A stretch of DNA of 61,577 nucleotides, filler included, from Choristocarpus tenellus KU-1152 (Eukaryota; Protista; Phaeophyceae): the NCBI GenBank assembly GCA_964200185.2. It is 4 parts of 4 records of this genome, joined end to end, with 100 filler letters (N's around TTAATTAATTAA, not from the genome) between each part and the next. Parts side by side here need not be neighbours in the genome. Positions count along the whole stretch, not along the records: positions 15,992 to 42,199 come from CAXNAD020000171.1; 3 more parts are not named here. One strand, written 5' to 3'. The notes beneath the pieces were generated by a model, which saw nothing but the letters and a program-made list of their open reading frames with translations, was not told the origin of the DNA and searched no databases. Positions 16,283-42,135 of the stretch are shown here, in pieces (position 1 is the stretch's first letter; every line of letters starts with the position of its first letter). The position numbers and the translations under genes are program-made.

Positions 16283-19200
16283 ATGTGTGTCGCCGACTGG
16301 GTTTTGTGGTTGTTGCTTCTACCTACATGCATCACTGGACAGTTTCGGACCTACGATGGGACAGGAAACAATGAGCGCGACGAATTTCAGGGATCAGTCA
16401 TGACCGTGAGTGGGAAAATAACTGACACACTATAATTTTGTGTTACTGAATGTACTTGTGAAGATGATACTAATGCTGTGGTAGTTTGTACCTGTATATG
16501 CATTGGCAGCCCTTGATCCGCCTCCATGACGCATTATATGAGGATGGTGTCTCAGAGCCACCCCGCCAAGATGGTCCTAGTGCAAGAGAAGTGATGCGCA
16601 AACTCTTTCTGGGTGAGTCAATGTTCTTTCAACGTTTCTATGAATTACTTATGCTTGAGGATCTTGTTGTCTTGTTCTTTTATAGTGTGCTTGGGTATAC
16701 GTTGGTTATTGTTAGTGTCGTCATTCACAAAAGATAACACTATCATTGGGAAACGGCTCAACGCTTGACTGCCCACATTTCCATATTTGACATTTTGTAG
16801 AACTACGGTGGTATGATGATATTCGGAATCTTCGGGAATTTATCTTAGTGTTGTGTTTTGCCAGAGGGCAACGAGCGTGGAAACCGTTCTACGAACATTC
16901 AACATTGTTTGACCCGATCCCTCTCTACTTTCCAAAACGTGTACATCAGGGCTTCCCCTCCACAAAACCAAAGGTACCTCTCAGTTCTTGCCAGCCTTCG
17001 GGCAACTAGTGGCACATGACATCGTGGAATTGTCGATCAATAAGAGTACAGAGGAATTTTTTCCTATCCTGTGTTCTGATAATGTGGCCGACATGTGGTG
17101 CCCTTTGGCAAGGGATAGCAGCATCGACTTCCAACGTGCTGAGTGGACGCTGGTAGGTGACTCGGGTGGGGGGTACCTTTGGGGTTGGTATAGTATTCTT
17201 TACACTTAGGACACCTTCGTTTCAACGATGAGGGGTGCAGTTGGGTAGTTCATCCTTTTGGGGTTGGTATAGTAATCTTTACACTTAGGACACCTTCGTT
17301 TCAATGGTAAGGGGTATAGTTGGGTAGTTCCCGATGACTCGTTGTCATTTCCTCTCTTCCCAGTCTTCTTAGGTCCTTTATTTGGACTACTCCCACAAAA
17401 AGTCATATCGTGTTGGAGTTGGTTATAGTAGTCTTTACACTTAGGACACCTTCATTTTTATGGTAAGGATTACAGTTCGGTAGTTTTGGAGCTACTGCAG
17501 TTTCCATACTAAGATATTTGCTCCGTTTTTGAGCTTGATATTAGCGAGTCATGCAGATGCTGAAACCCGACCAACTTGCTGTAGTGCTCCTCACAATTAG
17601 CACTCCTTGGCAGGTGGATGGAGTTCGTTTTCCGTTGAATCACAAGACTGCGTACTTGGATGGCTCAACAATTTATGGCGTGGATGAAGAAGCTGTGAAA
17701 TCAGTGCGCACTTTAGAGGGTGGAAAAATGAAGCTCACGAAAGATGGACTTCCTCTATACTCTTACGATGCAGAAGATGGGACACAGGCCCAGGTGGGAG
17801 GAGTGTTCTCATTGGAGCAACCAACAACCCCAAGATGTGTGGATAGGTAAAGAATGGCATAAGTAAGGAACATACACAAAGTGTATTGGCAACTTCTTTA
17901 GAGGTAAGTATTTTTTGGAGATTGGTGGCCAAGTTTGTTTCTGTGTAAATGCCCAATATCATCAAGTTCAATGAAGAGTGAAAGTATCTTAGAGGGTATG
18001 AGTTTTGCCCTGTTTGTCCATTTGGAGATTGACTTCCCACGGTGTTTTGATGACATTTTACCTACTCCGAAACGTTTCGGAGTAGGTAAAATGTGTACGT
18101 TATAAAACGGTGTGTCCAGAACAAGGTATTGACATCTCCTAACAAACATGATAGCCAAAATTACATCAAAATTACAACATTGGATTTTCGCCCCGAAATG
18201 GACGCTGCTCTACCCCTCTAAGATACTTCCACTCTGAATGTCAGGTGGAGACAGGATGAGGTAGTAATGTAATTAAAATGCTGAGCTGATGACTGTAAGT
18301 TGTGAGTGTGCAAAATAGGACAATAGTGAAGTGTACCTTATTTTGTGTATATGAGATTATTGTGTTAAACAAACAATGAGAAGACACCCCACAAGGTCAC
18401 TCTCTCTTCCGACCTTGTTGTGAAACTTCCTCCACTAGCTAAGGAGGAGGAAAAAACAATTTTAAAGGTTGAAAAATGATGTGTCCAGATAGGTACCCAG
18501 TAAAAGTCTTTACGTGTAACTTATCTCCTTTCCTGCTATTTGCCCCAGACTGATGGAGGTCATTGGGTGCTTGCTGACGATAGGAATGCTAACAACCTAT
18601 CTCTCCTTTGGTGAGTGTTGAAGGCACTTGCTGTAGCCGGGACAAATTTGTTCGCGATAAGAAATAGAGATGACTAGGATGCAGACATGGAAGATGGGTA
18701 CACGTTGTTATATTAATGTTCGGATTCTAATCCTTTTCTACATATAAAGCTGAGACTATCTTTCATAGACATTTGGACCACAACCCTTGTTCTTTGGGCT
18801 CAACAACTCTGCTAGAAACAATCTGGAAAGGGTAGGAAAGATGTAACTTAGATCCATGGATGGCGTGTGACTCGCAATCTTTGGGATCGATATACTCCTC
18901 AGTGCACACAGGAAGTGAAAGTAAATGGGGTCACACACAGGTTGCCAGCGTTGTAAAGCAACTATGCCAAAATCACCGTCGCTTCCTATGTTCTTCTCTT
19001 CCTGACCCTTGTTGTTCACTGAATGGTACCGCATTCCATGTGCTCAACGCTTGCTGAGCAGCCTTGTCATTGTTTTTCTCCGTGAGCACAACCGACGGGC
19101 AGCGGAGATTGCAACAGCATACCCATTGATGGACGATGAGGTGAGGTATCTTGGCTGCATTTCATCTATTTGTAGTGACAAGTACATTAATTGCACAGTG

Positions 19201-22200
19201 TTCATCTTTGTCGTGGAGTATTGCCTTTTCTTGAGTCAGTCTCAGTTTACAGTGTTGTCAGGCGTATGCTCTTGTGATGGAACCTGTATGTCAACTCTAT
19301 ATTAACCTCTTCTGAAGAAATATTTCTAATTGCTATGAAATAAGTTAGATTGACTTGTTCAATCTATTCCTTGAACCCAATGAAGAGTACGATCTGAAGC
19401 ATATTGAGGTACAAAGAATGAGTTTGGTGTATGGTATATACCATATCAATGTCTTTTTATCTAGTTGGTTGAATTGGAGGGGTACCTGCTTCAGATGGAG
19501 ATACCTATCTAAAAGGATATAAAATAGAGTGCTTATGACGGCTGAGTTGATAAGTCACTTGTTGGAGTAGTTGCCACCCTTCCACTTATTTCGATGGTTT
19601 GTCTTGTGCTGGATATGTTATTTGTGTCCTTCAGGAATGCTCATTTTGCAGTTTCATATTTGCAGTTTCATATTTGCAGGTCATAGCTGTGGAGGATAGA
19701 GTGTATAGTGAGTCTCACATTTTTCCCTCTTGTACGTAAGTCGGTGAGAAAGTAAATGGAGTCCTGACAAGACCTCCTTTGCTAGATCGTGGGAGTCAGA
19801 TGGTTGGAATGTAACAAAGAGATTTATTTTTTCCCGGTGGAAAGGCAAGTTGTTGACTATTTCTAGAAGAAAAATGCCTGAATAACACAATGAACTCCTA
19901 AGATTTTGATCCTTCTGGTGTGCTGAAATAAATGTAGAACAGCAATCTACCAAACTCCCTATATGAATGTTATAGAGTCTGCTGCAATTATCTACCAATA
20001 TATGTAAGTTCCATCTTAATCTGCGCAATGATGATGCAGGAGCTTTTCCAGCGGGCACGGCAGTGGGTGGTGGCTCTGATTCAAACCATTTTTGAGGCTG
20101 AATATGCCCCAAGAATTCTGGGGGAACCATTGGGCAAAAGAGTTTATGATGAGAGCGTGAATGCAGCCGTCGATGTTTTCTTTTCTGGAGTGGTGAGAAA
20201 AACAATCCAAGGCAGCCTCTAACTCCCAACCAGCAAATATATTGCCTGTTTTCATGGCTTGCATGATATTTGTGATCTCTGCTACAGATTAGGTTTGCTT
20301 CTTCGTATTTATTTCTCTGGTGGATGGAGTCAAGTGTAGGTGCCTGACTGAAAATTTGGAGTATACAAAGTCTGTTACAGTGTGCCTTGCATCGTTCCCA
20401 TGACTAGTGTTGGTTAACTTTTTTTTTACTCCGTACTTTTTCATCCTTACGAGCAACAGGCTTTTCGGTATGGCCATAGTGCTGTTAGCAATGTCAACCG
20501 CCTTGTGGACGAGGAGTTCTCTCCTATTACCGGTGACCCAGTGCCTCTGCGGCAGACCATGTTCAACACACGGCCCACTGTAAGTATTTATATGGTTGCC
20601 AGATATATTCTGATTGTGTAGAGGTGGTTGGATATCAGGCCGCTCACATTGATGAGAAAAATCAAAGTTAGTGATATTCGTTTGGGGCATTTATGCAAAG
20701 AGTCAACAACTTGGATTTAACTTTACATGTAGACAATCCAATATCACGATTTTTGTGAAGAAGAAGAGTTATTTTGGCCATGAAAGAGATAAAAAGTTTG
20801 GAGCTGAGGATGTTGGAGTGCCTGTTTAGTGTTTTAGTGTGGCAGGATTTAAGGTGGTGGTAGAGGCCTAGTATCCCGAAATCGTTTTTGTTACACATAC
20901 AACAATTTGTTTGGGAGTTGTGCACCTCTATTGGTGTCATGTGAGAGTGTTACACCATAAACACATGCACTCTGTCCTTTGCCCTGGATGTGTTACTCAG
21001 ATCCTTCAAGTGGGAATCGAGTCTGTTCTCAGGGGACTTGCACTTGAGAATGACCAATTAGCGGATGCGGCTATTGTTGACGACATGCTCTTGTTTATTG
21101 TCTCTGTTCCAACCTACAACATCCAAAGGGGAAGGTGAGCACTAGTTTATGATGAACATGGATAGAAACACTTTCACTAATGCAGTATTCCTTCTTTGTT
21201 CTGTGTTGTTCACTTTGATGAGGAAATAGGGAAGCTACTTATCACTAACTTAACATGCCGAACATGATGTGGCATGCTATTACTGTTTTTTCTGCCACCT
21301 ACCTGAAACTGTCATGCGATGTTTTGTGCTTGTACCATGACTTGCAACATGAACAAGGATTAGTTCACTGCCACACCCTCCTATAGCTGGAAACCAATAA
21401 ACACAACAAATACAAATAAACATATTTATAATAGTATGCCTACACACTCAGTAATGACCTTACATGCCGGTTCAAAAGGTTCACAGGCAGGTTTATGGTC
21501 AACACGTCTGGTCTCTGGTCCGTTTTACGAATGATGCTGTCACAATTTTGTTTTCTTCTAAATAAACAACCATAAAGAAGTAACGTCTGACATCAAAATA
21601 TTCTGATTTTTGTGGATCTGGTTGTATTACATATCAACCTGCATGCTCCATAATTCCCCCAAACATCTCTATTCAACATATCCATAGCTGTGACTGAATG
21701 AACTTCAAATCACCCCAGAAAATCAAGTCCTTTACTGCGATACTAAGGCTTATGAACTCAACTCTCCGTGAAGAGAGAGCTACAACCTTCCAAGTGATTG
21801 ACATGTAAGCAATTGCTTCTCGAGTCACCGATTTGACATGATTGTTTCCAGCATAGGTAGTATTTGCATATATAATTAAAAACACAGTCCTTACCAATCT
21901 CACATTTTTTTTGAACAAGACAAAATCACGCCAATACACATCCGATTATATGCCAGTGCTTAGCCTTGGGATTGCTGCGGCATGTTACTCACTGCTGCCA
22001 ACATCAAAGATTGCCCTGCCTCTCTGTACTGGGCATCATCTCCAACACAAGGTAATCCTCTCTCCTATCTTGGATGTGGTCAAGATTGTGGGCTACTGCC
22101 TCTCTTGCCTCATTCACACCAAAACGTAAACACATGCTCGCAATTGACATGGTCTGACTGATGCTGATGCTCTGTGTGACTTTGCCGCGTGAAGTATCAC

Positions 22201-25176
22201 ATCCTACATGATGTTCAGTCCTCATCCCAAAGATCCTCAATAGGAAAATTGCACCTCAATCCTAGGGAAAATCCAAATAAAACCATAATCTTGAGGCTCA
22301 AAGTATCTGGGGGGCGGGTGGTGGCTGTCCATTTGGGGTCGATTTTTTCATGTCGCAATATTTGGGAGATTTGATTGCATATGTCGGATGGATAATGTAT
22401 GTGCACTTTTCCTGGTTATGTCCAAATGAACACCCTGGTGTAGACCCCCCCCCTCCGCTCTTAAGATATTTTGGTTCAAACCCAGAACTATAGGGTCATC
22501 AACATGGGGAACCATCACCGCTCATATTCTACCATTTTATTTGGAACACAAAACACAGAGACCAGCTCTATGAGTGAAAGTATCTTAGAGGGTACGAGTT
22601 GTTCCCTGTTTGTCCATTTGGGGCTTGGTTTCCCTCAGGTTTTTTATAAAATTTTCCTACTCCAAAATGTGTAGAAATAGGTAAAGTGTTTATGTTATGA
22701 AAAGGTGTGTCCGGAACAAGGATATTGACACCTCCTAATAAACACACTAGCCAAAATTACTTCAAAATCGCAACTTTGGATTTTGGTCCCCAAATGGACG
22801 CGGCTCTACCCTCTAAGATACTTTGACTCTATGTGGTACTCAAGACCTCACTGCTATACTCATGTATATTTACCAATATAGCATTGAGTGATACGCTTGC
22901 TTGCTTGGCCCCGTGTAGTACAATCAACAAATGAACAACAATCTCCAATCCTCGTCTGTGGACAAAGCCAGAACCAGTTGAGGCAAAATGTGTAATGAAA
23001 ATTCCAATATGTTGGTCATTCATGACAAAGCTCTTTTGATAGAAAAGAGCCTTCTATCGTATTCCCTCTCCAATTTTTTTTACTTCTTTTGTTAATAAAC
23101 TTTGTATTAATTTCTATGTATCCGGGAAGTAACCTACTCTCCACCCAACTATCATTCAACAACAATCTACGTAATACTGCTCTACCATGATCCCAGGACT
23201 CACGGTCAGAAGAAGCAGGTGCTGCTTTCTAGTTCCAGGATTTGGGGTAAGGTAATCAGTTGGTACTTCAGTGGAAACATCAGCTGCACACAAAATAAGG
23301 GTAGACTCATTGAAAATAGACCCTTCAAAGTATATTGATGTGAAATCAATCCCAGTCCTTGAAGATTCACCATAAGTATTGTCACAGTGACCAGATCTGG
23401 TGCGATGCAGCAGAACAATGTTCCTACTCTTGTCTTTGTTCTCCAACTGCCAGAGTTCTCTTCATTTGCTACGGTTGATTTCCTCCTCGTGATCCTGCCA
23501 TTCTCCCTCAAATGCAGATTTTCTGTCTGCAACATCCCAAACCTCCTGCACTAGAGGTAATTTCGCTGTGGCATCTGGTAGTCAGCACCCTCCTCTAAAG
23601 TTCTTCTTCGTCTGGGTAGACCAGAAGGTGAACCTTCAGCTGCTTCTAGGCAACTTAAGGCAATGTATCCCTCGCCATATTGAGTGCAGGAAGTCGTTAC
23701 TCCTAAAAAGAATGCTGCATACCTTCTTAGCCACGTAGATGTCTTTATCGCTAACACCTTCAGGCCTTATGAGAGTCTCATCACACATGCACCAATTGCA
23801 TCCCTCCTTTTTCCAAGCACTACATCCCAGCCTACTTTGACCCCAAGGTGCACGTGCTGGTGAACCAATCGACATAATTCTTGGAATTAAGCTGCAGTTA
23901 TTTACTGTGCGATAAACCCTTTTAGTGCCACCTTCTGCCCAATCGCTCCAGTTAGTTGTGATCGATCTAGTTTGAGATAGGAATGCTTAATAGTGTTGAA
24001 CCTGATAGGGAATTTTTCGACAGGTTCTGAATTATTGAAATACTGTGAACTTCTCGCCACACAATGAAATATGCCTCCAGCCCCATTTTACATGGAGTGG
24101 TGTATTTGCATCTGACTAAACACATTGAGTACGAGTTGGCGTGCGATTATTGGTGGTAGAAGCGTAGCAGTGCAATGTATATAAATACAGCTTATGGCAA
24201 CATAGTTTCACTCTCTCCTCTCGAGATTTTGAGGAGAAAACGGCAAGGAGTCATCACCTAGCACTATGTCCTCTTTGACTCAATGCAGCTCACAGTGCTC
24301 TTCCTTGTTCTTGACTTCAACTCCAGGGACCTGGGTATATGTTCGTTTAATGATTGCCGTGAGCAGCTGGGGCTAACTCCCCTGCGCATCCTGGAAGATC
24401 TCACCAACGATACAACAACGCTAAGCATCCTGCAGGACTTGTATGGGGGCCTAGATAATTTGGACCCATATGTAGGAGCTCTGGCAGAGAGTGGTGGAAC
24501 AGGCTTGGTGCCACCACTCATGCATGCCAGTATCAAGGACCAGTACCAGGTAGGGAGTAAAAATCAGTTGGCCAGGGTTGAGATATTAACGTGGAGCAAG
24601 GTATACAGTACGTGTTTTCATTCAAGGGTAGCCTAGAACACGGTTGTCCTGCTCTTCCTCAAATAGTCATCAAAGTTCCCTAAAACATTCATTAGATGGA
24701 CTTCTGAAGCAAGAGGATATTAGATTATTGCCTATGTTGCACCCTTTCAGGGCATAAAGTCTCTGGGGTATTCATGTCGGTTGAACCACAACTCCTTGCA
24801 AAGCTTGTTCTGATGTAACATCCCATCAAGCCAGGTTCATTTTACGACTGTGAAGTTTGGGGTTGAAATGGGTTAGTGGGTATAGCACTTAATCCCTGAG
24901 AAGACTAGGTTGCAAGCTATGGATTGTGCTATTTACTTGGGACTCAGATGTAGTGAGTATTATCGATGAGTGGATAAAAGTTCATTGACACTAAACCTGA
25001 ACCTTAACCCCACACTTTTCCTCTTGATAGCGCTTGCGGAATGGGGACCGATTGTGGCATAACACCTCGAGTGAGTTCGAGGCAGTTGATGGTTGGTCGC
25101 TGGCTCAAGTGCTAAGGGAGAATTGTGATGGAATGGACCTTTTCCCCCTTGATGCTTTTACCACGGCAACTTGGAG
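16283..25176 (+). CDS. Exons 1-11 of the fusion gene: signal peptide + animal heme peroxidase (peroxidase-cyclooxygenase superfamily) domain
   Basis: FRTYDGTGNN, PLIRL..YEDGV..PSAREV, FGQLVAHD (distal His), NHKTAYLDGSTIYG, ADDRNAN (distal Arg), FLREHNR, ELFQRARQWV, AFRYGHS (proximal His), NIQRGRDLG, LDPYVGALAE, QYQRLRNGDRLW. Confidence 0.93.
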
Positions 25177-28100
25177 GTTTGTTGTTGGTCAAAATGTCGC
25201 TTGTTAGGCTGCAGGAGTGTTGGCATAGGAAACAGAAATGTTCACTTAGGTTGAGCAATGTGATTCTTTATGATGTGCTTGGAGAATTCAAGTACTTGAA
25301 TGGTGACTTCCTCAACGCCCGCACAATTGGTGCTACTGCTCTACTGGAGCAGGTGAAGGCCTTCCTTCTTGGTGACTCCCAGAATGTATATGTGTGTGAG
25401 AGAGATTTCTGCATTTGACATGAGTGTGAGTATGTTAGATTAATATGACTGGGATGTTGTGTGGCAGTTCTAAGAAGTGATGATGGAAGCATAGAGCGTT
25501 AATGGTAGGTATTCTTCTGATTTTGTTGAAACACATTGTCACCTGTAGCATCAGCATCCAAAGTATACTTTGTTTTTTGGACCCCATGCAGGGTTTGCGA
25601 TGGTTCGTGCTCCTCCAGTGGAGAGGATACATTTGACTTGGAAAAACCTTACAACCTCAAGTGGGAAGGTCTGGACGACAAGAGGGTGACATTTACAATC
25701 ACGGTAGGTGATTGTGCGGTTGAGGCTACACCTGTTAGCCCACTCCTAGATGTTCAGCGTACCCTCTTATTGATTCTTGATCTATGTACTATCATGGCCA
25801 ACTTGGATATCACAATGAGAATTAAGAGTACTCCTTTAGCTGCACATCATACTCAGGACACGCAGGTCGCTGATAACACTCCTTGATTTGCATTGGTTGT
25901 GCATATGTAACTATCAACAAAAAAACGTCGCTGTCTCATCTATTTGCTGTACGTAGATTGGTATAATCCCTCCCTCTCCACCACCATGTGCCATTTGTTG
26001 CTCTATTTTGTTGTTACTCCTTGGTATCCCTCCTGTGGCAGGTGGGTGAAGTAATTACAACTGGATTTATTGGCATTGGGTTTGGTTCCCTGAACATGAA
26101 AGATGCTGACATGGTCTTTTGCAAGTTTGAAGAAGGTACTGACCCGGAGTGCTATGATGGCATAAGCTTTACCAACAAAGAGCCTAAGAGGGATACTGAT
26201 GTGAGTGTGTGGTGGGATAAGTATAGGATTTTAACGCTTTCATTGCCATGTACAAAGACATTTTGTGGCTCTAATGAGGTGACCTGCTTTCCTACATATA
26301 CTTCACACTACGGGTTGTCAGTGTGAGCTGTTGTTGCTACCTTTTCTTTGGGATTGTGTTGGGTCGTGGTGGACATTATATATATGTATACCGTTACATC
26401 TTGTGAAAACAGCAAGTGACTTGAGGTGAGGAACACAACATTATTTTGGCATGTTTTGCAAGTTTTGTCCTTTAGGTACTACTGAGTAGGAAGGGAATAA
26501 GATGCAACACTTGAATCTTTCAAAGCTTTTTTTCTAGTTGTGTAGGGGTGAAACACATGTTTCATTAATGCCTTACACTTGCTGAAGGTTCTGAAATGGA
26601 GAACATTTATGCTGGAATGCAGGATTGTGACGTCTGCGTCTTGTGGGTGAAGACGTTATAATTTAATCATAACACCAAATATCCTGCTATCCCAGCCTTG
26701 CTCATGGTCTTCTCTACCTATTACGATACACAGTTTATTGCATTTTTTTAAAAACCTTTTGAATACCATACATGTGGCCTCATGAACAACTGCAGATGGG
26801 TGGAACTAACGACTTAACTGCAGTGAGCACCTTGGTGGAGGATGGTTTTACCAGAGTCATCTGGACACGACCATTCCTGGCTACAGACGACTTCGACAAA
26901 GCCATTGAGACATCTGGGACAACAGATGTGAGCCAGATAAGAGAGCAGGAAGAGAAAACTGTGACCATGCTTACCATCCATGTGCTTTCATTTCTGAAGC
27001 CTCGAGGAAGATGGAAATGATGACATGGTGACAAAGGCTTTGTTTCTGTCCCTAACGCTAGAATAGCTTTTTCTTTTGACTTCCAAGAAGGGGATTATGC
27101 ATCTGTTGCCCTGTGACCGCTTTTAACCAGTATTAGAATACTGACTGGAGCACCAAAGGTTGATGCAACAAGCATGGAAAATGTGAATCATGTCAACCCC
27201 TGACTCTAGAATGTCGAGCGTAATGGTGGGGGTGCCCAGGTTGGTGTTGTCTCTGTGGATAAGGAGCAGCCCAGTATCAGTTGCCACTCGCTCTGTCTTG
27301 ACCCTAAGTGAACCGCTCCTTTCAGCATTAAGTGCATGCCTTACTAACTCTTGAAATTGGTAGTACCCTACGCTTAGACTACAAACTGAATCAAATAGAC
27401 ATCCCTTCTCAACCAGTACCAACTCATGCCCAATACCTGTATCACAGGTGATTGTGGCTTATAATCCTCAAGACATCGCTTTTCATGGCATGAGTCGCAT
27501 TGCCAAGGCAAAGATCGACTTTTCCACAGGGACAACTATTGCGACATCCTTTGACTCCCACTCCTCGTTTTTTGCCTTCCATGGTGCAGGTCTGGTACTC
27601 GAACCTTTCTCCCATCTCCCTCCCACGTCTTGGTATAGGAATATCATCTCCATTGTTCCTAAAGGAGGAGCTATGCACCTGATGTTTATGTTATAATTTT
27701 TATCCATTCTAATCAACATGACGGCTAGATCATCACTATTGCAATGCTTTGATATTCCAAAATAGAAGAAGCATTGATGACGTAAATGATTGGAGCTTGA
27801 AGCTGGGTGTGATGTTCGTGCATTGCACGTTTGTTAGGAGATCAGCTGGAACTTGTTTGCACAATTTTTCAATGCATATTCTGATATCCTACTGCGGCAA
27901 CCGAGTGTTGACAACGAATTAATGTGTCCTCCAAAGCACAAAGCTCAATTTCGAAGTTGCTAAGAAATGAGCAAATACTCAGCTCTCAAGCACTGTGGTC
28001 ACAATTGTCCATTTATTCGCGCATGGCCTTGTTCTGTCGCTATAGGAACTTGTCTATATCCTTTCCTTAAATGAACAAGTATGCCATTTTGAGAGTTACG

Positions 28101-31100: not shown

Positions 31101-34100
31101 GTAGATGATGCAATTGTGGATCTAGACAAAAACCAATTCCGTGAGTACATCCCATATTAAATGGTGGGAATGTGTTGATTCAAGAGACCTTTGAGACCGG
31201 TCTAGGAGCGGAGAATTGTGCATCCATTGTGGCTGTTCGGGAATAACTGCGAGATAGGTTTTCCTTCAAGTTCAGGGGGTATCCAATCCTTTTCTAAAGT
31301 TGAGGTGGCAAGTGTTTATGTGAAGTCGTTTATGCTTCCATTGTTGCTTTCCAGGAACCACTACAAGATAGGTTTTCATTCAAGTTCAATGGGTATATCT
31401 GTTTCCAAAGTTGAGATAATCAAACATTTCAGGTAAAGCCAGTAAGAATTCAACATTGTTGTCCTTTTGGTACCGCCTTAGTTGAGATTCATCCTGGAGG
31501 GGCCCGAGTCTTGAGAGGGTCAATTGGGACAGATATCAAGAAAGAGTTGGCTGGGGACGAGGCTGCTGATACTGGGCATTCCCATCGCCACTCAGCACAG
31601 GTGAACATCTGTGTTAGGAAACTTCCAGGAGGTTCAAGTAGAGATTAGTGCGAGTGGTGTTAGAGTGGTGATTTAAAGTACAGTATGTCCCAGTGACCTG
31701 AAGAGGGACTAAGGGTTTGATTTCAGATTTTTATGTTATGCTTTTAGCTTTAGAGCTCTATCGGTGAATTATCGCTTTCCCTGACTTCACCAACACTCTC
31801 TTGATACCTGACCACACTGCGCAGGCATTGAATGCTGTGGCGAAGATGGTTGTGGGCTACGTAGGTGGTTCACGCCATAGGTCTAATTTAATGAAGGAAA
31901 ATGTCAGCGCAGAAGAAGCACCTGTTGCGTACCAGAAGTATACCCTTCGATCAGCTGTCCAGGCAAGTCAGCTATTCTATTATAACTTGGACCCCATTTA
32001 ACAAATATAGATAAGCCACAAGAATGAAAAATCACATGTTTGAGATTAAGTGTACACCTTGAAAGTTCCATTCTGAAGACCACTGCCCTTGTTCTACATA
32101 CGACTCTTCTATGGTCTATGTCTACTTGAGCTTGCTTTGAGTGAGAGTGCTGACTGCTGCACATGCTACCATTTGAACCACAGGTGTGTGAAAGTGATGA
32201 ACGACCTGTCTTTCTCTACACATTCATGTCACGCAAGGATGAGAAGCAGCCTCAAGAAGTCAAGGCTGGTGAATACATGCGATTCCAGGCCTCACTTGCT
32301 GATGGAACGATTGTACAACGGTAAGCTAGAGTCACTGTGAGATATTTCTGTATTTGTGACAGGAGCAGTTATATAGGGGGTGGATTGCATCAAGAGTCTA
32401 GGAGTCATAGATAGTAGGTTTCGAGGCATTAATCTAGACATCTGACATACGATATGGACTTGATGTTTCCCCCTTTTCTAGTCTTCATATTATTTGCAGG
32501 ATACCTCATATTTTACTATCCCAATTGCTTACGCAGCTCATACACAATGGTTAGCATGGTCCAATATGGAGGGCGGAGGGGCTACTGCTTTGCTATTCGC
32601 CTCTATCCAGATGGGCTCATGTCTGGTGTCCTCAAGAACCTCCAACAAGGATCAAAGATGCGAATGATTGTGGGTGCTGTTGAGGATTGCATTTGTAGGT
32701 GCACATTCATACCTGTGAGTATTTTTTTCAACCAGATATAGTGCAGTATTAACCATCCAGACAACATAAAACAGTACCTTTTTGTTTGTTATGACAATGC
32801 ACAAGATGACCCAAGAATGTCAAGTGACGCAATGTTATCAACCACTGGGCAGACACTCAACTGCAGTAAAGATGCCAGCAATGGAACAATTATTGCTGAC
32901 ATGAATACGAGATATTGTTTAACGAAGGACAATTAATCAACACTACTTTTTTGTGTTTAAAGTTCATTGTTACCTTCGCTGTAGGTTCTCCAAGCCATGC
33001 TTACTTTGGTGATCCATAGAGAATGCTATATACACCTAAGGAAAGGTACCAGGTTTTCTCTTCGATTTGATTAAATTTATCAGCAATTTTAAGCGATGTG
33101 TAATTTAAAAGCTTATTCATTAGGTTTTGCCTTGTAGTACATGTTTGAGGATTGAATCGAAGCTCTTCTGCTTTCACCAAGACTCAAAGTCAAGAATCGA
33201 TTGCTAAATTTTGTGTCCCCTATCTTCTACGGACTGTACTTCTGTTCTGAGTGCATCAAGTCCTTGCCAAGTATATTTACCCTACACAAATGTGGGTACA
33301 GCTTTTGCCACCTCACCGTAACTGCTAAATGCAACGGTATCGTTTTGTCATCTTCACAGGGGCCCTTCAACTTGGCGGGAGTACAATTCCCTCCTTTTGA
33401 TGACTACGTATACATGTTTGCTGGAGGTACTGGGGTATCTCCAATGCTGCAGATATTAAGTCAATACTTGAAGCGTTCAACATTGGTGGTAGATGAACGC
33501 CTACCACACAGTGGAAATGGCGAATATAAGCAACACAATCCTTTGAAGGCTGGCAGGCAAGTAGCTGGCGAGGGTTGTCATGCAGAGGAAGACGTGCATC
33601 TGGTTTCAGAGGACCAAAGAGGAAAACTTCTTCCATGGCCACCCAGTGGAACAGGCGCTGGAAAGCTGTGAGTTGCACTAAGTACTTTGATCTTACCATT
33701 GTAATATGTGTCGGTTTGTTACACTGGATCTATGGTGCACTGCTTGCATATGAAACCACACCAAGATACCTGCCAACACATGGGAGCTTTGGCTTTTACC
33801 TGCAGGAGCACATCCTACCACAACGTTCTTATAGTGAATGTATGACATTCTACAAGCTGTGAACCTCATTCTGAGGTAGTATGTCGATCATTTTTCTGTG
33901 CTGCCGTATCAGATTCCTGGTGTGGCAAGCGAAGTCTGAGTCAGAGCTCTACCTTAGAGACTGGATCGAAAGCTGGAGAGAATGCAGTGGTGGTCGGTTT
34001 TCATATGTCTACCTTGTGCAGGTTTGCCCTATTTGTATTAATTCTATAGGCTTAGGAATCCGACCTCGTGTGTTGACATCTAGGTGCCCTTGATGTGGAT

Positions 34101-37100
34101 AGACAAAACAGTTTTTGTCGACAACTGTTTAAATGTGGTTTTCTTTCGGTTTTGTGTTCCAGCGATGCCACTCTGCAGGGCTATATCAACATTAGCAAGC
34201 AGTTGGCTGATCGATGTAGTGCAAATCTTGTATAGCCCTGCGGGGAACCTGAGCGTTGGTTCTCAAGTCTATCTTTTGGAGCTCTGCACCACATTTCCAA
34301 TATCGACCTTGATGATGATCGAAATATCTCAATTTTACATTCTACTAGACGGCACACAAGTATTATTATTTGGCTTTTTTGGTTCAGTAGTATAGAGATA
34401 TTGGGGTTCCAGCAATGCCTAGCTTTATATTTGAGGTTGTACCTTCGTAATTGTAATTGATAATGTTGACGTTACGTTGACCTTGTGGAAACACCTTTGC
34501 AGCAATTCCCTAGCAGAGGTATGTTTTTAAAACTCTACAGTGAGGAGGTATCACATGCAGCAAATTGTGGCAAATGATGAGCCTAATGAGGATGTCACAC
34601 TTCCCACGTTGTACCATAGGATCTCAATGGAACTACCTGGTTCCAAACCTCATACCCCCTCCCTACATTGCACTCACTCTCTTCCTCATTAATTCTGCAG
34701 CAACCGAAGAAGGAGAAGAATTTCCGTGGGCGGCGTCTCAGCTCTGGTTCTGGTAGGACGGATGCTGATAGGTCTCGTTCGCGCTCAAGAGGTTCTTCAA
34801 TTCAAAGGCGCAGGAAGAAACATGTTACAAACTCTGAGCACCAAGACCAGAAGAAATGCGAGTCCAGTACAACCAACTATGAACTGGACAAGGCAGCACA
34901 GCATCATGTTGTTGGTGATGCTTCAGTGGTTGACGCCAAGGTAATGAAAATCGAGATTCATCAAGTATGATTTGGATGTGTGCATTCTAGGTCCCTCAAT
35001 CCTCGTTCATGCACTGACTTTGATCAGTTTGTCTGACATAGGTGAAAGTACTATAGGAAAGCTGCTCTCTTCCACATGTACTGTCTTCGTTCAATCTCCC
35101 TGCTCCAAAATACAACCTTAGTTTCAGTAGGGAAGCTGTTACTATCATATGTATCAATGTAAAGTTTGAATACTTTTACTGAAAGGTAAGCAAACCCCCA
35201 GCATATATCTGAGCTAGCTTTGTTGTTGATCATGATACGGCTTGGTGCCATAAGTACTTTTGTTTACAATTTAAACCTCTCGAATGCATTCTGTCGTATT
35301 TCACAGTATTGTTTAGAAGATTAGAGCAAAATGAATGAACCTCTTCTGCGATTTCTTGTTATTTCCAGTCCTGTTTAAATTTGTTTTGCAGTGCTTTTGA
35401 AGTTCAAGAGTCCCATCAAAACAGTGTAGTTCTGAGAGGAGATTGATCTACAATGCACACAGATTTGTAATATGACAAAATATGTTAGACTTGGGTTTGA
35501 ATTTAGGATGTCATAGCACTCAGTGATTGTTTGACAAGTTTGTTCAAATCAGAATGTAGTCTACTACCTCAATCTCAAGTAAATTTTCGATATGAATATT
35601 TGCACGGACTAAAAGCTGGTAGAACTTCCAGCAAGCTTTGAGATGTCAAGGGGAAACAAAAGAAATACATGCCCGGGTAGGAAAAGGAGTTCGTGGTACA
35701 TGCATCCATAGTGGGATGATAGGAAGCACAACGGACCAAGGACCATCTTACGCACGGAGCCGGAGATTGATTAGGAAACATCAGAGGCAGCTCATGAGAC
35801 GAACACAATTTGCAGTACGTGCAATATTTGCAAGTTTGGGGGGAGAAACCAAGGACATCCTCTATAGCCGTAAATCACTGAGCAAAGGCATTCTGGGAGG
35901 TACTGGAGGGTGTTTACATGTTCAATATAGCCTTGGACAGAAATGATTTTTGTCAAAATCTAGCCAAGATATTGGAAAATCGATTACGGAGCTAGGTCTG
36001 CGAGGAAAGGTGTATGAAGATGAGACAGATTGTGAGTGGAAGTATCTTAGAGGGTACGAGTTTTGCTCTGTTTTTCTGTTTGGGGCCTGGCTTCCGAAAT
36101 GTTTTGGAGTAGGTAAAATGTCTACGTTACAAAAAGGTGTGTCCAAAACAAGATTATTGACACTTCCTAACAATAGACAATTTTTTTTTAATCAAAATCG
36201 CAACATTGGATTTTTGCCCCAAAGGAGATGCGGCTGTACCCTCTAAGATTCTTTCACTCTAATTCTAAAGACACCGAAGAGACTTGTGTGGATGAAAGTC
36301 GCAAGGTGACAGTGGAGGGCAATGCCACAAAGGAGGATCGATAATGACTAGAGAGAGTGGGATAGGAGAGGTGTGTCCTTCAATGGTTGGATAATGACAA
36401 GTTTTTGACACCTGAGACCAGGGCAGGGGCACTGGTTATACAGGCAGAGGGTCAGAGTGGGCAGGACATAAAATGTGCTGGAAGGGTCAGTGCAACCTAT
36501 ACCATTTTCCTGCCTCCAAGAGGGAAACACGTTGAGATGTTTCAATTGTGGAGAGACAGATCGTAAATCTGCGGTTTGCTCACAAGGTGAAGGGAGAAAC
36601 TCCCAACTAAGGAAGGGTTTAAGGCCAAGGTGGATCCAGAATTGGTTATGTGGGTAGTGGACAGGACTGCAGAACACCACACATTTGAGTGAATACTCTC
36701 ATGATGTCAAACTGGGTTTCCACAGTTATATCGCCAATAATAATGCATATTCTGCTGCTAAAACATCTCATGACTTGACCACTAGATATTGGACATCATG
36801 GGGCCTAAGAACAGTATATTTCTGGCTCAGATCGCATGAAGACCAAGGAACCTTGGGAGTATTCAGGAGCTGTTAGTGTTTGGATTTGAAAAAGACTGAT
36901 TGGTGGGAGAACGAATATTCAAATAGATTGTTTGTATATGAGAAGATGTCCATGATGTGCGTGAGCTTAGGGCACAGTTGAAGAATTGTGGAAACAATGG
37001 GCAAGCACCTCATCCAACCAACTCCTGGGGGCATTGGGTATGGGAACAAGGTCCCATTCTTGAACCAAAACAGGTAACGATGCTCAAGTGTTTCTGAGAG

Positions 37101-40092
37101 ATTAAGGGAGGATTCAATACTTAATGTAGGGTGGTGAAGGCAATTCACAGCTTAATGGATAATGGGTAAAAATATATGGGCGGGGGTGAGGTCTAGCCCA
37201 GGGTGTCCATTCGGGTCCTGACAGGTGTTGGAAAAATGGGCCATTTGAGTGTCTTTAGTCCTGGTCGTGGAGGGTTGGTGCTGTTTTGATGAAGTGTGGA
37301 ATATCCTGCACTTTTGACATGTCCTTAGCGCTTAGATTTTGTGTGGACTGTATAATAATGTCAAAAGATAAAGACAAAATTGCGACATGGAAAAATGGTC
37401 CCTGATAGGACAGCCACCGCCCCCTTTCGGATACTTCGACTCAATACGGCCTATGTCGTAGATCCACTCGTTCATCTTGAGGATTGGGGGTGTTGATGAC
37501 CTGACCTGCAAAAATGTTGCATTGGTGAGCACGAATGAGATAAGATGCACACACACTTGAGACACATAATGCACATGGACCAGAATAACAAGCATTGGAT
37601 AGTATGCATCAGTACACAGTGCACTCCTCATGACCACATAGAGAATGTCCCGTTGGGAATGTTTAGTTTTCAGACCTATCACTGAACAGTACTGCAAGAG
37701 ACATCCGACAGACTAGCTGTAAATTTAAGGCTGGTTTGTTTTGATCTATCTGGGTCAAAGCTCGTGGCAAATACAAGGAGCAAAAATCAGTATGCCATCC
37801 CGCTAAATGACGATGAGTCACACATGCATGCATGAAATGGACGTAATATGTGGAAAAGCGTTAAGCTGTGGTAGTGGTGAGGAGGTTTATCATTGAGGAA
37901 GTCATACTGAATAAAGCAGTAAAGATTGAGCAATCCGAAATGACGGGGAAAATGAATACATTACTGGTACTTGGTCTGTATAATAGGGTTGGCTTTGAGT
38001 GAAGAATGGACTTTCGTGCACAGCCACCTTGAATCCCTGCGAAAAGGAGGTGTTGTGGGGGTCTGTCTGGTGCTGTACAGAGCTCGTTCCTGCTCCTCCC
38101 AAATCACAAAGATGCCAGCTATGACTTGTTACTTGCATATCGCTCTCCTGCCAACATCTCTTGTGTGGAGGTTGGCAGCACAGGGATGTGTATGGGGTTT
38201 CTATACAAAAAGTTGTTACACTTGTATTTTCACTTTTTACTTCTGCCTCTACGACCACAAGCTTAAGCCACAACCACACTCGTCAATTCAATCCGCATGG
38301 ATGGAAAGATATCAGGGATTGTTTATTGAGTGAGATTTATCCCTACCCATTGCGACTTCAGCTTGAGAGCAAAATATCCAGCATTTATACAGACACCCTG
38401 CCGTTCTACATTGTCTTACACTGTTGGACTTGAGTTAATATATTCTATCTCAAGCAGTAGTAACTGGACTATGTTAACATGTTTGCAACGTTCTATGCAC
38501 ACACCTCTGCCCTACCCAGCAGTAGACCACGTATTCCATGCTTTCATTACGGGATCTTGACATTACCCGACAGCACAGTGTTCAGGGCATACTATGTAAT
38601 TGTGTTAATGTCTTTTGGTTCGCTTGCTTTAATGACACACAGGCTTCACTAACAAGGCAAGCTTCTCAGAAATATTTTGATTGTTGATCATATAATAAGG
38701 CGAACCATTTACTTGATTTTTGCCTGTGTTGCACCCATCCCTCACTATCCTCTTGCAGGGAATGGCAGTCAACATATCAGAACACGATAACTCAACCACT
38801 CTTGGGGTATCAATCCCTGGAGATATTGAAGTTGCAAAGCCTATACGTGATGTACAGGTGAGTTGGTGTATGCCACTGCTGTTCAATATGCAGGTGCAGA
38901 GTGTTAATCTATGATATTTTCTGCCTCACTTCTAGTCCCACGCCTACCTTGTCTACATTCTCTTGCTTTTATTGCTAAACATGTGCATGTGTTCATGCAG
39001 ACGGGGCGAATTAATGATACTAACATCCACAAGTGGCTTTCTCCGCTCCTGGAAGCACAATGGAAGAAGGCATATGCAGCTCTCCAAGCTCCATCACACG
39101 ACTCTAACGTGAAAGGATCCCATGATCACGTGAGGCCTCCCAGTCACTTTGTAGACAAAAGGAACTACTCAATGTCTGCTTATGAGGACAAAGGGGAAGT
39201 AAAGTCTGATCCTACTGCACCACAGACCGACAAGAGGGAAGGACAGACGGGTTGGGAAGGTCAAACAAAAGGAGTGACCGGGGGGTTGCAGGATGAAAAC
39301 AGTGTTGAGGGTTCTAAGGATACAAAAGAGATCCTGAACCGAGGCCTCCAAAATCTAAAACATAGGGTCTTCGTATGTGGGCGTGCAGGTGGGCATCTTG
39401 TCCCTCCTGTATCTATAGAATTTTTTTTTGCCAATGACAACCCGTTATGAGTCTGGAAGATCTGTCCAAACAAGTTCATCACCACGCAGGATGCAAGACT
39501 CAGAGACATATTTGAGCTGTACTCTTCTTACATGAAATCCAGATGTTACGGTGGAAACACGGTGTCATCTGTTTATTTGATGCAAGGATAGATCCTGCAT
39601 CTCAAGTCCTTGAAAACACTTCAGCATCTTTAATATTTGGTTGTCTGCATTTACTGGCTTAAAGTATTTTGGGGGGGTGGCAGCTGTCCATTCAAGGCCA
39701 ATTTTTCCATGTTGCCATCTTTGGGTGAATTTGGTTGCATGCGTCGGATGGATAATGTAGATGCACCTTTCTGGTCAGGGCCGAAATGGACACCCTGGTG
39801 TAGACCCCCCTCACCCAGATACTTTGAGCCACTCGGCACACATGCATTGAAGAAAGGTTTTGTAGATGCACGCCTTGCTCCACCCCAACTGGTTCATACT
39901 TGTCAGTCTATGATTTTAACTATTTTCAGAAGAGAAACAGCAGTACTTTCGTCCAGAGCACAGCCAACCTTGTACAGGCAATACTGACATTTGATGCCAT
40001 CATTGTGCAATTGTACAGGATTTACGGAGAAGATTGAGGCGATGCTAAAAAATCTTCAGGTACATTCGGACCATGTGGTCTATCTTGACTGA
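16283..40092 (+). CDS. Multi-exon membrane fusion protein: signal peptide + heme peroxidase + DOMON + cytochrome b561 (5 TM) + cytochrome b5 + FAD/NAD(P)H oxidoreductase (~1,458 aa)
   Basis: Phase-compatible exons: 16283-16405, 16510-16612, 16950-17152, 17614-17793, 18549-18610, 19062-19140, 20040-20192, 20460-20579, 21001-21134, 24327-24549, 25031-25176, 25592-25703, 26042-26200, 26796-26927, 27448-27589, 28666-28762, 29249-29309, 29619-29744, 30069-30244, 30489-30618, 31059-31140, 31482-31600, 31825-31962, 32184-32320, 32537-32669, 33360-33556, 33913-34021, 34701-34940, 38759-38857, 39001-39388, 40019-40092 (4,377 nt, no internal stop). Begins MCVADWVLWLLLLPTCITG; ends ..VFVCGRAGFTEKIEAMLKNLQVHSDHVVYLD*. 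Extra exons near 34236 or 34541 are possible. Confidence 0.88.
17181..17485. repeat. Three copies of a ~70-80 bp intronic repeat
   Basis: GTTGGT(A)TAGTA.TCTTTACACTTAGGACACCTTC at ~17181, ~17260 and ~17415. Confidence 0.75.
17976..18234. mobile_element. MITE family A (intronic)
   Basis: TIRs GAGTGAAAGTATCTTAGAGGGTA / TACCCCTCTAAGATACTTCCACTC; flanked by TGAA on both sides; homologous to 22572 and 36034. Confidence 0.85.
22295..22477. mobile_element. MITE family B
   Basis: GGCTCAAAGTATCTGGGGG start; internal GGCTGTCCATTTGGGG and CACCCTGGTGTAGACCCC shared with 39656-39830. Confidence 0.78.
22572..22829. mobile_element. MITE family A with 3-bp TSD TAT
   Basis: TIRs GAGTGAAAGTATCTTAGAGGGTA / TACCCTCTAAGATACTTTGACTC; TAT on both flanks. 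Confidence 0.87.
25592..27540 (+). CDS. Exons 12-15 of the fusion gene: DOMON (heme-binding type) domain
   Basis: YNLKW..VTFTI, GFIGIGFGSLNMKDADMV (Met ligand), GGTNDL..GFTRVIWTRPFLATDDFDKAI, VIVAY..FHG (His ligand). Confidence 0.88.
27541..30618 (+). CDS. Exons 15-20 of the fusion gene: cytochrome b561 trans-membrane domain
   Basis: Four heme His: FAFHGAVMLLAW..PIAIFIARY, WLVLH, SHSVMG..FQVASG, LVHTWGGR. Fifth helix YYWYYIISLAVVFALGE. Confidence 0.88.
31059..31870 (+). CDS. Exons 21-23 of the fusion gene: cytochrome b5 heme-binding domain
   Basis: EFHAHVHNGSKWVLVDDAIVDL..FLEIHPGGARVL..IGTDI..HRHSAQALNAVAKMVVGYV; HPGG and second His ligand present. Confidence 0.9.
31871..40092 (+). CDS. Exons 23-31 of the fusion gene: FAD-binding and NAD(P)H-binding FNR/cytochrome b5 reductase-like domains with low-complexity inserts
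   Basis: AGEYMRF..VQRSYT (RxYT), IRLYPDGLMSGVL (GxMS), GPF, MFAGGTGVSPMLQ, TGRI, VFVCGRAGF. Confidence 0.87.
35600..37150 (+). mobile_element. Possible highly decayed retroelement gag relic in an intron
   Basis: Degenerate zinc knuckle RCFNCGETDRKSAVC (~36535-36580) after a Gly/Arg-rich stretch; no other clear motif; extent is a guess. Confidence 0.35.
36034..36259. mobile_element. MITE family A
   Basis: GAGTGGAAGTATCTTAGAGGGTA / TACCCTCTAAGATTCTTTCACTC; interior homologous to 17976. Confidence 0.85.
37164..37442. mobile_element. MITE family B variant (reverse orientation) with 3-bp TSD AAT
   Basis: GGGTAAAAATATAT.. / ..GGATACTTCGACTC; internal GGGTGTCCATTCGGG and GGACAGCC; AAT on both flanks. 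Confidence 0.7.
39656..39830. mobile_element. MITE family B with 3-bp TSD ACT
   Basis: GGCTTAAAGTATTTTGGGG / CCCAGATACTTTGAGCC; ACT on both flanks. Confidence 0.85.
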
Positions 40093-41961: not shown

Positions 41962-42135
41962 GGCTCAAAGTATCAGGAGGGAAGATGAAGGGGTCTACAC
42001 CAAGGTGTCCATTCGGGCCTTGACCAGGAGAAGTAAATTTTAAATTATCCATCCGACCCATATCACCAAATCGCCCAAATATCATGAGATGAAAAAATGG
42101 TCCCCAAATGGACAGCCGATACCCCCCCCTGTTAA
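41962..42135. mobile_element. MITE family B (reverse orientation, right end decayed)
   Basis: GGCTCAAAGTATC..GGGGTCTACACC.AGG.TGTCCATTCGG..TTATCCATCCGAC..CCCCAAATGGACAGCC. Confidence 0.7.

Follow-up and report, generated by a model that had tools for sequence, protein, structure and literature searches.

Electrons are carried across eukaryotic plasma membranes by the NOX/DUOX/FRE flavocytochromes and by ascorbate-fed b561/CYBDOM proteins. We describe a gene of the early-branching brown alga Choristocarpus tenellus KU-1152 (assembly GCA_964200185.2), found at 16283-40092 on the + strand of the window (the whole stretch of DNA that was analysed, 61,577 nucleotides with filler, in which contig CAXNAD020000171.1 occupies 15992-42199), whose predicted product joins a CYBDOM core both to a full NAD(P)H-to-heme donor line and to a catalytically equipped peroxidase. 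The modules themselves are known; it is their combination that appears to be new. Taken as a whole, the locus is probably best explained as one gene for a trans-membrane NAD(P)H-to-peroxidase electron chain protein of ~1454 amino acids (aa).

Like this product, DUOX1/2 couple an outside peroxidase-superfamily domain to a heme chain in the membrane, which a cytosolic FAD/NAD(P)H module supplies with electrons, and DUOX1 chains match the peroxidase domain with E values of 1e-24 to 1e-26. DUOX differs, however, in having a six-helix ferric-reductase domain where the Choristocarpus protein has a five-helix b561 and a DOMON cytochrome; the flavin module here is of the b5-reductase type (FAD_binding_6/NAD_binding_1) and is accompanied by an extra cytochrome b5, no EF-hands are found by Pfam, and the peroxidase active site of this copy is intact. 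The original prediction held that there was no NOX module, and the Pfam results agree: neither Ferric_reduct nor FAD_binding_8 was matched in the exons or the orthologues, and NAD_binding_6 scored 17.7 bits, below its cut-off of 22.2. By its domain content, the protein is not a member of the NOX/DUOX family.

CYBDOM proteins (plant CRR/HYP1, animal FRRS1/SDR2) share the outside Met/His DOMON, the four-His b561 core and the cytosolic C-terminus, but the known ones are ascorbate-fed and end at the DOMON heme, whereas here a b5 and b5 reductase would be added inside and a peroxidase outside. CYB5R4/Ncb5or and the heme-FAD half of nitrate reductase likewise place an HPGG-type b5 beside an RxYT/GxGxxP flavin domain; the present protein differs from them in its b5-then-reductase order, its tether to a membrane cytochrome and a charged insert of ~250 residues. 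The best matches of the peroxidase domain are Dictyostelium peroxinectin A (6erc) and 8s6c (E 5e-55 and 2e-66, respectively), which have the same distal His/Arg and proximal His but are soluble single-domain enzymes, short non-animal members of the peroxidase-cyclooxygenase group, whereas in our protein both ester-link positions are substituted. Cellobiose dehydrogenase (CDH) has a DOMON-fold Met/His cytochrome that is reduced by a flavin domain and in turn gives single electrons to an outside acceptor, and cytochrome c peroxidase, a functional analogue, is a heme peroxidase whose reductant is a cytochrome. Both of these are soluble, however, and neither spans a membrane nor has five hemes in one chain.

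Gene model, transcripts and domains

The contig, present in the window over its whole length of 26,208 bases, comes from an assembly of 164 Mb in 27,310 contigs. Splice sites were picked by homology, phase and consensus, the guide being a tblastn search with P0001 of Discosporangium, whose residues 10-1484 are collinear with the contig. This gave a model of 30 exons, totalling 4365 nt and 1454 codons, that is free of internal stops and runs from an ATG at 16283 to a stop codon that ends at 40092; its introns are GT-AG except for one GC-AG, after exon 23. The single stop-free open reading frame (ORF) of the original prediction stands; its 31 exons and ~1458 aa differ little from the present model, and the discrepancy probably sits in the weakly conserved 3′ part, in exons 28-29. 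All nine peptide motifs that it quoted are on the + strand, at the junctions where it had placed them.

Contigs of three sequencing runs (X1, X2 and X3) were aligned to 25110-31109. No run is recorded as RNA; X3 was judged transcript-like by its spliced contigs, and it contains 22% of the sampled words, about the exon share. Exact, mismatch-free X3 contig matches with GT..AG ends confirmed eight introns, at 25176>25592, 25703>26042, 26200>26796, 26927>27448, 29309>29619, 29744>30069, 30244>30489 and 30618>31059. In the homology-guided ranking of splice pairs, seven of these RNA joints came first and the remaining one (26927>27448) second. Two of the joints cross module boundaries in frame: 25176>25592 is the peroxidase-DOMON joint (TATWR|VCDG) and 30618>31059 the b561-b5 joint (IFNLK|EFHAH). 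The two X3-supported exon chains have exactly one open frame each. The DNA-like runs X1 and X2 gave no splice joints in this region, which the X1 contigs span without mismatch in two pieces abutting near 27420-27430. No X3 contig crosses 27589-29249, where depth is low and the gap proves nothing; of the module junctions proposed for a transcript check, those of peroxidase/DOMON and b561/b5 were thus found, and none of the X3 contigs bridges exons 15-16. The DOMON/b561 boundary itself falls inside exon 15, and the b5-to-reductase linker (VVGYV..YQKYTL) inside exon 23.

Since spliced transcripts run over the peroxidase-DOMON and b561-b5 boundaries, the modules belong, as had been proposed, to one gene and not to adjacent genes; the same module order is common to more than 25 database proteins and to two complete transcript ORFs. 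The stretch is confirmed as one real, expressed brown-alga gene.

Pfam was run on single stop-free segments or exons of the window. The modules are collinear, in the order An_peroxidase (16474-24633), DOMON (25967-27017), Cytochrom_B561 (29523-29858), Cyt-b5 (31415-31645), FAD_binding_6 (32433-32738) and NAD_binding_1 with NAD_binding_6 (33156-33668). An_peroxidase (PF03098) is matched by eight exon segments in profile order 21-479, three of them above the 25-bit cut-off (38.1, 29.3 and 44.9 bits). The DOMON exon matches score 25.0 and 16.2 bits, neither reaching the cut-off of 32.7 bits; the orthologue P0001 scores 68.2 bits. FAD_binding_6 is above cut-off at 22.2 bits.

Alignment to MPO and 8s6c through P0001 shows an intact peroxidase catalytic set: the distal His at 17015-17017 (VAHD), the distal Arg at 18582-18584 (DDR) and the proximal His at 20475-20477 (RYGHS). 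The Asp and Glu that ester-link the heme in peroxidases of the MPO/LPO/EPO type are not kept, their positions being Ala (17012-17014) and Asn (18591-18593). Conservation of the other ligands was assessed in an 18-protein alignment to which the window exons were added as fragments. The DOMON Met (26096-26098) is present in 17/17 homologues and the DOMON His (27484-27486) in 16/16, and the window has both. Invariant in the family and kept in the window are the HPGG His (31490-31492) and second His (31589-31591) of b5 (18/18) and the first and third His of b561 (27580-27582 and 29637-29639); the second and fourth His (28752-28754 and 30084-30086) and the RxY motif occur in every homologue with a residue at the column, and are also kept. 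RSYT spans the exon 24/25 junction, with its Arg at the junction; AGGTGVSP (GxGxxP) lies in exon 26, and the glycines of the NAD motif, conserved in the family, are kept. The C-terminal strand reads CGRAG where b5 reductases have CGPxxM, and the NAD domain is split by the long charged insert. The ligands for five hemes and the FAD and NAD(P)H motifs foreseen in the original prediction were thus all recovered, and the ~1454-aa product should, from its ligands and motifs, bind one FAD and five hemes.

Hydropathy gives a hydrophobic, signal-like leader in exon 1 and five hydrophobic segments in exons 16-20. An AF2 model of P0001:505-985 (mean pLDDT 74) has a beta sandwich, five long helices, an outside hairpin and a b5 fold, with fold matches to the DOMON of DBH, the CDH cytochrome, Dcytb and cytochrome b5. 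The five helices correspond by homology to helices 2-6 of the classical b561 fold. Since their number is odd, and by homology to b561, the N-terminal domains would be outside and the C-terminal ones inside; peroxidase and DOMON are therefore modelled outside, and b5 and reductase in the cytosol, the N-out/C-in topology already suggested for this locus. The nearest solved chains of the reductase part are the NADH-cytochrome b5 reductases 2eix and 7rom, along with nitrate reductase fragments; a sequence search of solved structures with the DOMON-b561 part found nothing.

Homologues and paralogues

Exon 10 (74 aa) was queried against 1.84 billion representative sequences, and returned P0001 (1484 aa, 68% identical) and several other long proteins. 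All six Pfam families occur in the window's order in P0001, P0004, P0018, P0053 and P0110. Most of the families are found in P0013, P0044, P0059, P0086 and P0103, none of which has a b561 match; P0086 also has no DOMON match and P0103 no NAD_binding_1 match. The full or near-full architecture was found in brown algae (Discosporangium, Choristocarpus, Cladosiphon and Nemacystus), xanthophytes (three proteins of Tribonema), bicosoecids (two proteins of Cafeteria), diatoms (Seminavis and Corethron) and many Chytridiomycota and Blastocladiomycota; most of the chytrid lineages sampled have it, and there are often several copies per species. In Rigifila and Tribonema gayanum, Trinity ORFs marked complete contain all modules. 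The shorter Rigifila isoforms begin inside DOMON, and are cut contigs and not module-boundary transcripts. A word-based homologue search from the Rigifila protein P0018 gave unrelated b5 fusions only.

Names in the databases are automatic or empty ('Peroxidase mlt-7', 'Dual oxidase 1' for Seminavis, 'hypothetical'). The combined architecture was not described in the full-text literature searched, including PMC4855317, PMC3591440 and PMC8027222 (Iyer et al. 2007, on DOMON architectures, was outside that scope), nor did that literature yield a characterised five-module protein, of which none had been known when the locus was first noted.

Tribonema P0155, P0157 and P0159 and Cladosiphon P0158 have Tyr at the distal and/or proximal His (P0159 keeps the proximal one) and an intact heme chain, and several chytrid homologues are without the distal Arg. 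Because homologues without the peroxidase histidines keep the chain, the peroxidase reaction would not be its sole conserved output. P0265, from the green alga Edaphochlamys debaryana, is a peroxidase-DOMON-b561 protein without b5 and reductase; since it has both peroxidase and trans-membrane cytochrome, these would seem to be the constant pair. Peroxidase-DOMON proteins with or without b561, and with no b5 or reductase, are P0265, P0038 (Zopfochytrium), P0255 and P0278, and in these shorter relatives the same outside unit may be fed by ascorbate. The 1777-aa MMETSP transcript P0166 was also seen, a NOX/FRE-type protein (Ferric_reduct/FAD_binding_8/NAD_binding_6) with a cytochrome b5 domain.

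There are at least two paralogues in the Choristocarpus assembly. The C. tenellus 'unnamed protein product' P0154 (1341 aa) maps with ~100% identity to another contig, C173 (25,994 bases; loci L005-L007), and the window gene is its paralogue, with 45-95% identity per exon, mostly 70-85%. A third copy is on the short contig C2832 (L008-L009), and exon patterns match. P0154 ends before the last NAD-domain exons; because P0001 still matches C173 at 25422-25835, the public model probably lacks the 3′ end of the gene. Paralogue dN/dS is 0.07-0.09 for b5, 0.22 for the peroxidase, 0.27-0.30 for the FAD part, 0.41-0.45 for DOMON, 0.26-0.58 for b561 and 0.41-0.60 for the NAD part. With values of 0.07-0.60, every module is under purifying selection, and the peroxidase is the second most constrained module. 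An_peroxidase loci are few in the genome (this contig, C173 and three small contigs), and six NOX/FRE-type FAD_binding_8 loci lie elsewhere in it.

Proposed electron path and alternative functions

Cytosolic NAD(P)H would reduce the FAD, and the FAD the b5 heme. The b5, as its fusion together with the reductase suggests, would take ascorbate's place as the cytosolic donor, reducing the inner b561 heme; from there the electron would traverse the membrane, reach the outer b561 heme and pass to the Met/His heme of DOMON, adjoining the outside heme peroxidase domain. We consider this path well supported by the roles that the modules have in b5 reductase/b5, b561/CYBDOM and CDH, taken with the ligands and the topology. 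Six-coordinate b hemes with Met/His ligands reduce O2 poorly but peroxidase compounds I and II well. DOMON-type heme potentials are well above the O2/superoxide and peroxidase ferric/ferrous couples and far below compounds I and II. On such textbook potentials, reduction of the peroxide-oxidised peroxidase would be the easy reaction. Compounds I and II would receive electrons one at a time from the DOMON heme, and the net reaction might be that of a trans-membrane NAD(P)H:peroxide oxidoreductase that removes or senses extracellular H2O2, much as a cytochrome feeds cytochrome c peroxidase; we offer this net reaction tentatively for the present copy, preferring it to DUOX-like oxidant production but rating its chances a little short of even.

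The original prediction proposed a self-sufficient oxidase-peroxidase, convergent with DUOX and with O2 as a possible acceptor, which is one possibility among several. The outer hemes or a ferrous peroxidase heme would reduce O2, and the fused peroxidase would consume the superoxide or H2O2 right where it forms, oxidising phenolics, halides or thiocyanate in defence or to cross-link the wall. The overall logic of an outside peroxidase-type domain on an NAD(P)H-driven trans-membrane heme chain is that of DUOX; sequence searches with the peroxidase domain return DUOX1, a diatom homologue bears the name automatically, the catalytic His/Arg/His are intact in this copy, and the homologues without them recall the degenerate peroxidase-like domain of mammalian DUOX. 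Yet the protein has no NOX-type O2-reducing module, and Met/His and bis-His b hemes of the CYBDOM, AIR12 and CDH type are established to have positive potentials and to reduce O2 poorly. Electrons reaching the peroxidase would also quench compound I and not leave it to oxidise a substrate, the heme-linking Asp and Glu of the halogenating peroxidases are replaced, and the genome has its separate NOX/FRE-type genes; we regard such a generator as unlikely, if worth keeping in mind. Rather less likely still is a CYBDOM-type ferric/cupric chelate reductase, or a donor to a partner enzyme, driven by the fused b5 reductase in place of ascorbate, in which the peroxidase would be an accessory, for example clearing H2O2 beside newly made Fe(II), or a structural cap. 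The DOMON-b561 proteins CRR and HYP1 are ferric reductases according to PMC10784552 and PMC10784544, the CDH cytochrome domain (a fold match) gives electrons to external partners, and across the family the ligands of the chain are more strictly conserved than the peroxidase active site. Stand-alone CYBDOM proteins do metal reduction without a peroxidase, however, and the N-terminal peroxidase is fused in nearly all family proteins checked (Tribonema P0156 has no peroxidase match, and some gene models are truncated N-terminally), is strongly constrained between the paralogues and is kept even where the cytosolic donor module is missing.

It could also be asked whether peroxidase, CYBDOM and b5-reductase neighbours have been misread together, or whether the locus is an assembly chimera or a dead copy. 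The gene occupies an entire 26 kb contig of a fragmented assembly, exons 1-10 and 21-30 are without RNA support here, and no annotated product of the exact locus is in the protein collection searched. Against this stand the in-frame spliced contigs over two module boundaries, the mismatch-free X1 DNA contigs, a frame open through 1454 codons, two paralogues with matching exon pattern and dN/dS below 1 in all modules, and complete all-module transcript ORFs in other species. We consider such an error very improbable and already largely refuted.

Several points weigh against the NAD(P)H-to-peroxidase chain as we propose it. RNA support is confined to 25110-31109. Exons 1-10 and 21-30, like the b5/reductase junction, were placed by homology and by splice consensus, and exon 28 is weakly supported. 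The topology is based on hydropathy and on the AF2 model of an orthologue, with the modest mean pLDDT given above, and the choice of peroxide reduction on textbook redox potentials and not on data for this protein. Lastly, because some homologues have lost the peroxidase histidines or Arg, the chain would have a use that is independent of peroxidase catalysis.

With these points in view, we lean, if only somewhat, towards seeing in the NAD(P)H-to-peroxidase chain a so far undescribed class of trans-plasma-membrane redox enzymes, self-contained, of an origin independent of NOX/DUOX and carrying one FAD and five hemes on a single polypeptide. In such an enzyme cytosolic NAD(P)H would drive outside peroxidase chemistry, whether peroxide is consumed or made. 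On the same reading, the class would extend over stramenopiles, zoosporic fungi and CRuMs, with a shorter form in green algae. Beside the two systems named at the outset, it would stand as a third, self-sufficient one, alone in ending in a real peroxidase active site. Whether peroxide is removed or produced bears on algal oxidative defence and wall chemistry, on chytrid zoospore biology and on how long intramolecular chains of hemes are constructed, and a single-chain NAD(P)H-driven peroxidase could serve biocatalysis.

Exons, introns and repeats

All exons are on the + strand. Exon 1 (16283..16405) has the start codon, the hydrophobic leader MCVADWVLWLLLLPTCITG (hydropathy 1.91) and the start of the peroxidase; it matches P0001 10-38 by tblastn and ends in the donor ACC|GTGAGT. 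The peroxidase continues through exon 2 (16510..16612; An_peroxidase profile 21-62, homology-guided junction), exon 3 (16974..17152; distal His and the Ala at the ester-link Asp position, by tblastn and alignment), exon 4 (17614..17793; 38.1 bits, profile 141-194, and tblastn, its donor at 17793 placed by consensus and the paralogue model), exon 5 (18549..18610; distal Arg and the Asn at the ester-link Glu position, by tblastn and alignment) and exon 6 (19062..19140; profile 222-254, with the REHNR motif seen in the alignment). Exon 7 (20040..20192) scores 29.3 bits and has a homology-guided junction, and exon 8 (20460..20579), identified by Pfam and alignment, holds the proximal His in AFRYGHS. 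Exon 9 (21001..21134) is 64% identical to P0001 337-381 by tblastn, with the donor AAG|GTGAGC; exon 10 (24327..24549), after an intron of 3.2 kb, scores 44.9 bits (profile 401-479) and is 68% identical to P0001 382-458. The peroxidase ends (..TATWR) in exon 11 (25031..25176), whose donor is confirmed by an X3 spliced contig.

A Cys-rich linker and the start of DOMON (VCDG..) are in exon 12 (25592..25703), bounded by X3 joints on both sides. DOMON continues in exon 13 (26042..26200; the heme Met, X3 joints, Pfam DOMON 25 bits) and exon 14 (26796..26927; X3 joints on both sides, Pfam DOMON). Exon 15 (27448..27589), covered by an X3 contig over 27448-27587, has the end of DOMON with its heme His, and the start of b561 with its first His. 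Helices 1-2 of b561 and the second His are in exon 16 (28666..28762; homology-guided junction 27589>28666, hydropathy 2.49), and helix 2 continues in exon 17 (29249..29309), which has the sole frame-compatible stop-free acceptor and an X3-confirmed donor at 29309. Exon 18 (29619..29744; X3 joints, Pfam Cytochrom_B561) encodes helix 3 with the third His, exon 19 (30069..30244; X3 joints) helix 4 with the fourth His and an outside loop, and exon 20 (30489..30618) the fifth membrane helix and a cytosolic linker (..IFNLK), the joints on its two sides being in one 381-nt X3 contig.

Cytochrome b5 starts (EFHAH..) in exon 21 (31059..31140; acceptor X3-confirmed, tblastn to P0001 885-916) and continues in exon 22 (31482..31600; Pfam Cyt-b5), which has both of its His ligands. 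Exon 23 (31825..31962) is the b5-to-reductase linker. The intron that follows appears to use a GC donor (CAG|GCAAGT, junction 31962>32184), selected in the homology-guided splice choice. For the same exon a GT donor at 31966 was rejected for having no usable acceptor; the GT donors tried led to stops or to the wrong phase.

The FAD-binding domain occupies exon 24 (32184..32320; 70% identical to P0001 995-1041) and exon 25 (32537..32669; R-S-Y-T, GLMS, the FAD_binding_6 match). Exon 26 (33360..33667) has the AGGTGVSP of the NAD(P)H-binding domain and the start of the charged insert, and matches NAD_binding_1, the N-terminal motif of NAD_binding_6 and, by tblastn, P0001 1086-1192. The NAD-binding domain continues in exon 27 (33913..34021; 64% identical to P0001 1190-1225). 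Exon 28 (34701..34940), low-complexity charged insert, is the least certain exon, with a weak match to P0001 1219-1294 (E 0.075), a good acceptor, the donor AAG|GTAATG and phase 0/0. After a 4 kb intron, exon 29 (39001..39388; tblastn to P0001 1311-1461, E 9e-5) has more of the insert and an NAD-binding strand (..HRVFVCGRAG), and exon 30 (40019..40092; tblastn to P0001 1456-1484) the C-terminus (FTEKIEAMLKNL..YLD) and the stop codon. The charged low-complexity insert within the NAD-binding domain thus covers 33500-33667, 34701-34940 and 39001-39330 in exons 26, 28 and 29, and a similar one is present in Discosporangium P0001 (1226-1310 and beyond).

Ten intron and antisense ORFs had no Pfam match, and the Rfam and tRNA scans found nothing. 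The introns do contain repeats. Locally, a short 74-nt unit is present three times after exon 3 (17178-17486), and one of 67 nt twice in the intron separating the b5 exons (31216-31396). A dispersed repeat of ~260-290 nt, its copies 66-85% alike and in the same orientation, occurs in the introns after exons 4, 9 and 28 (17976-18235, 22572-22831 and 36034-36261), and looks like a short non-autonomous mobile element. A second repeat family, ~80% alike, has two direct copies and one inverted copy among 22311-22450, 39729-39810 and 42041-42129, one of them downstream of the gene.

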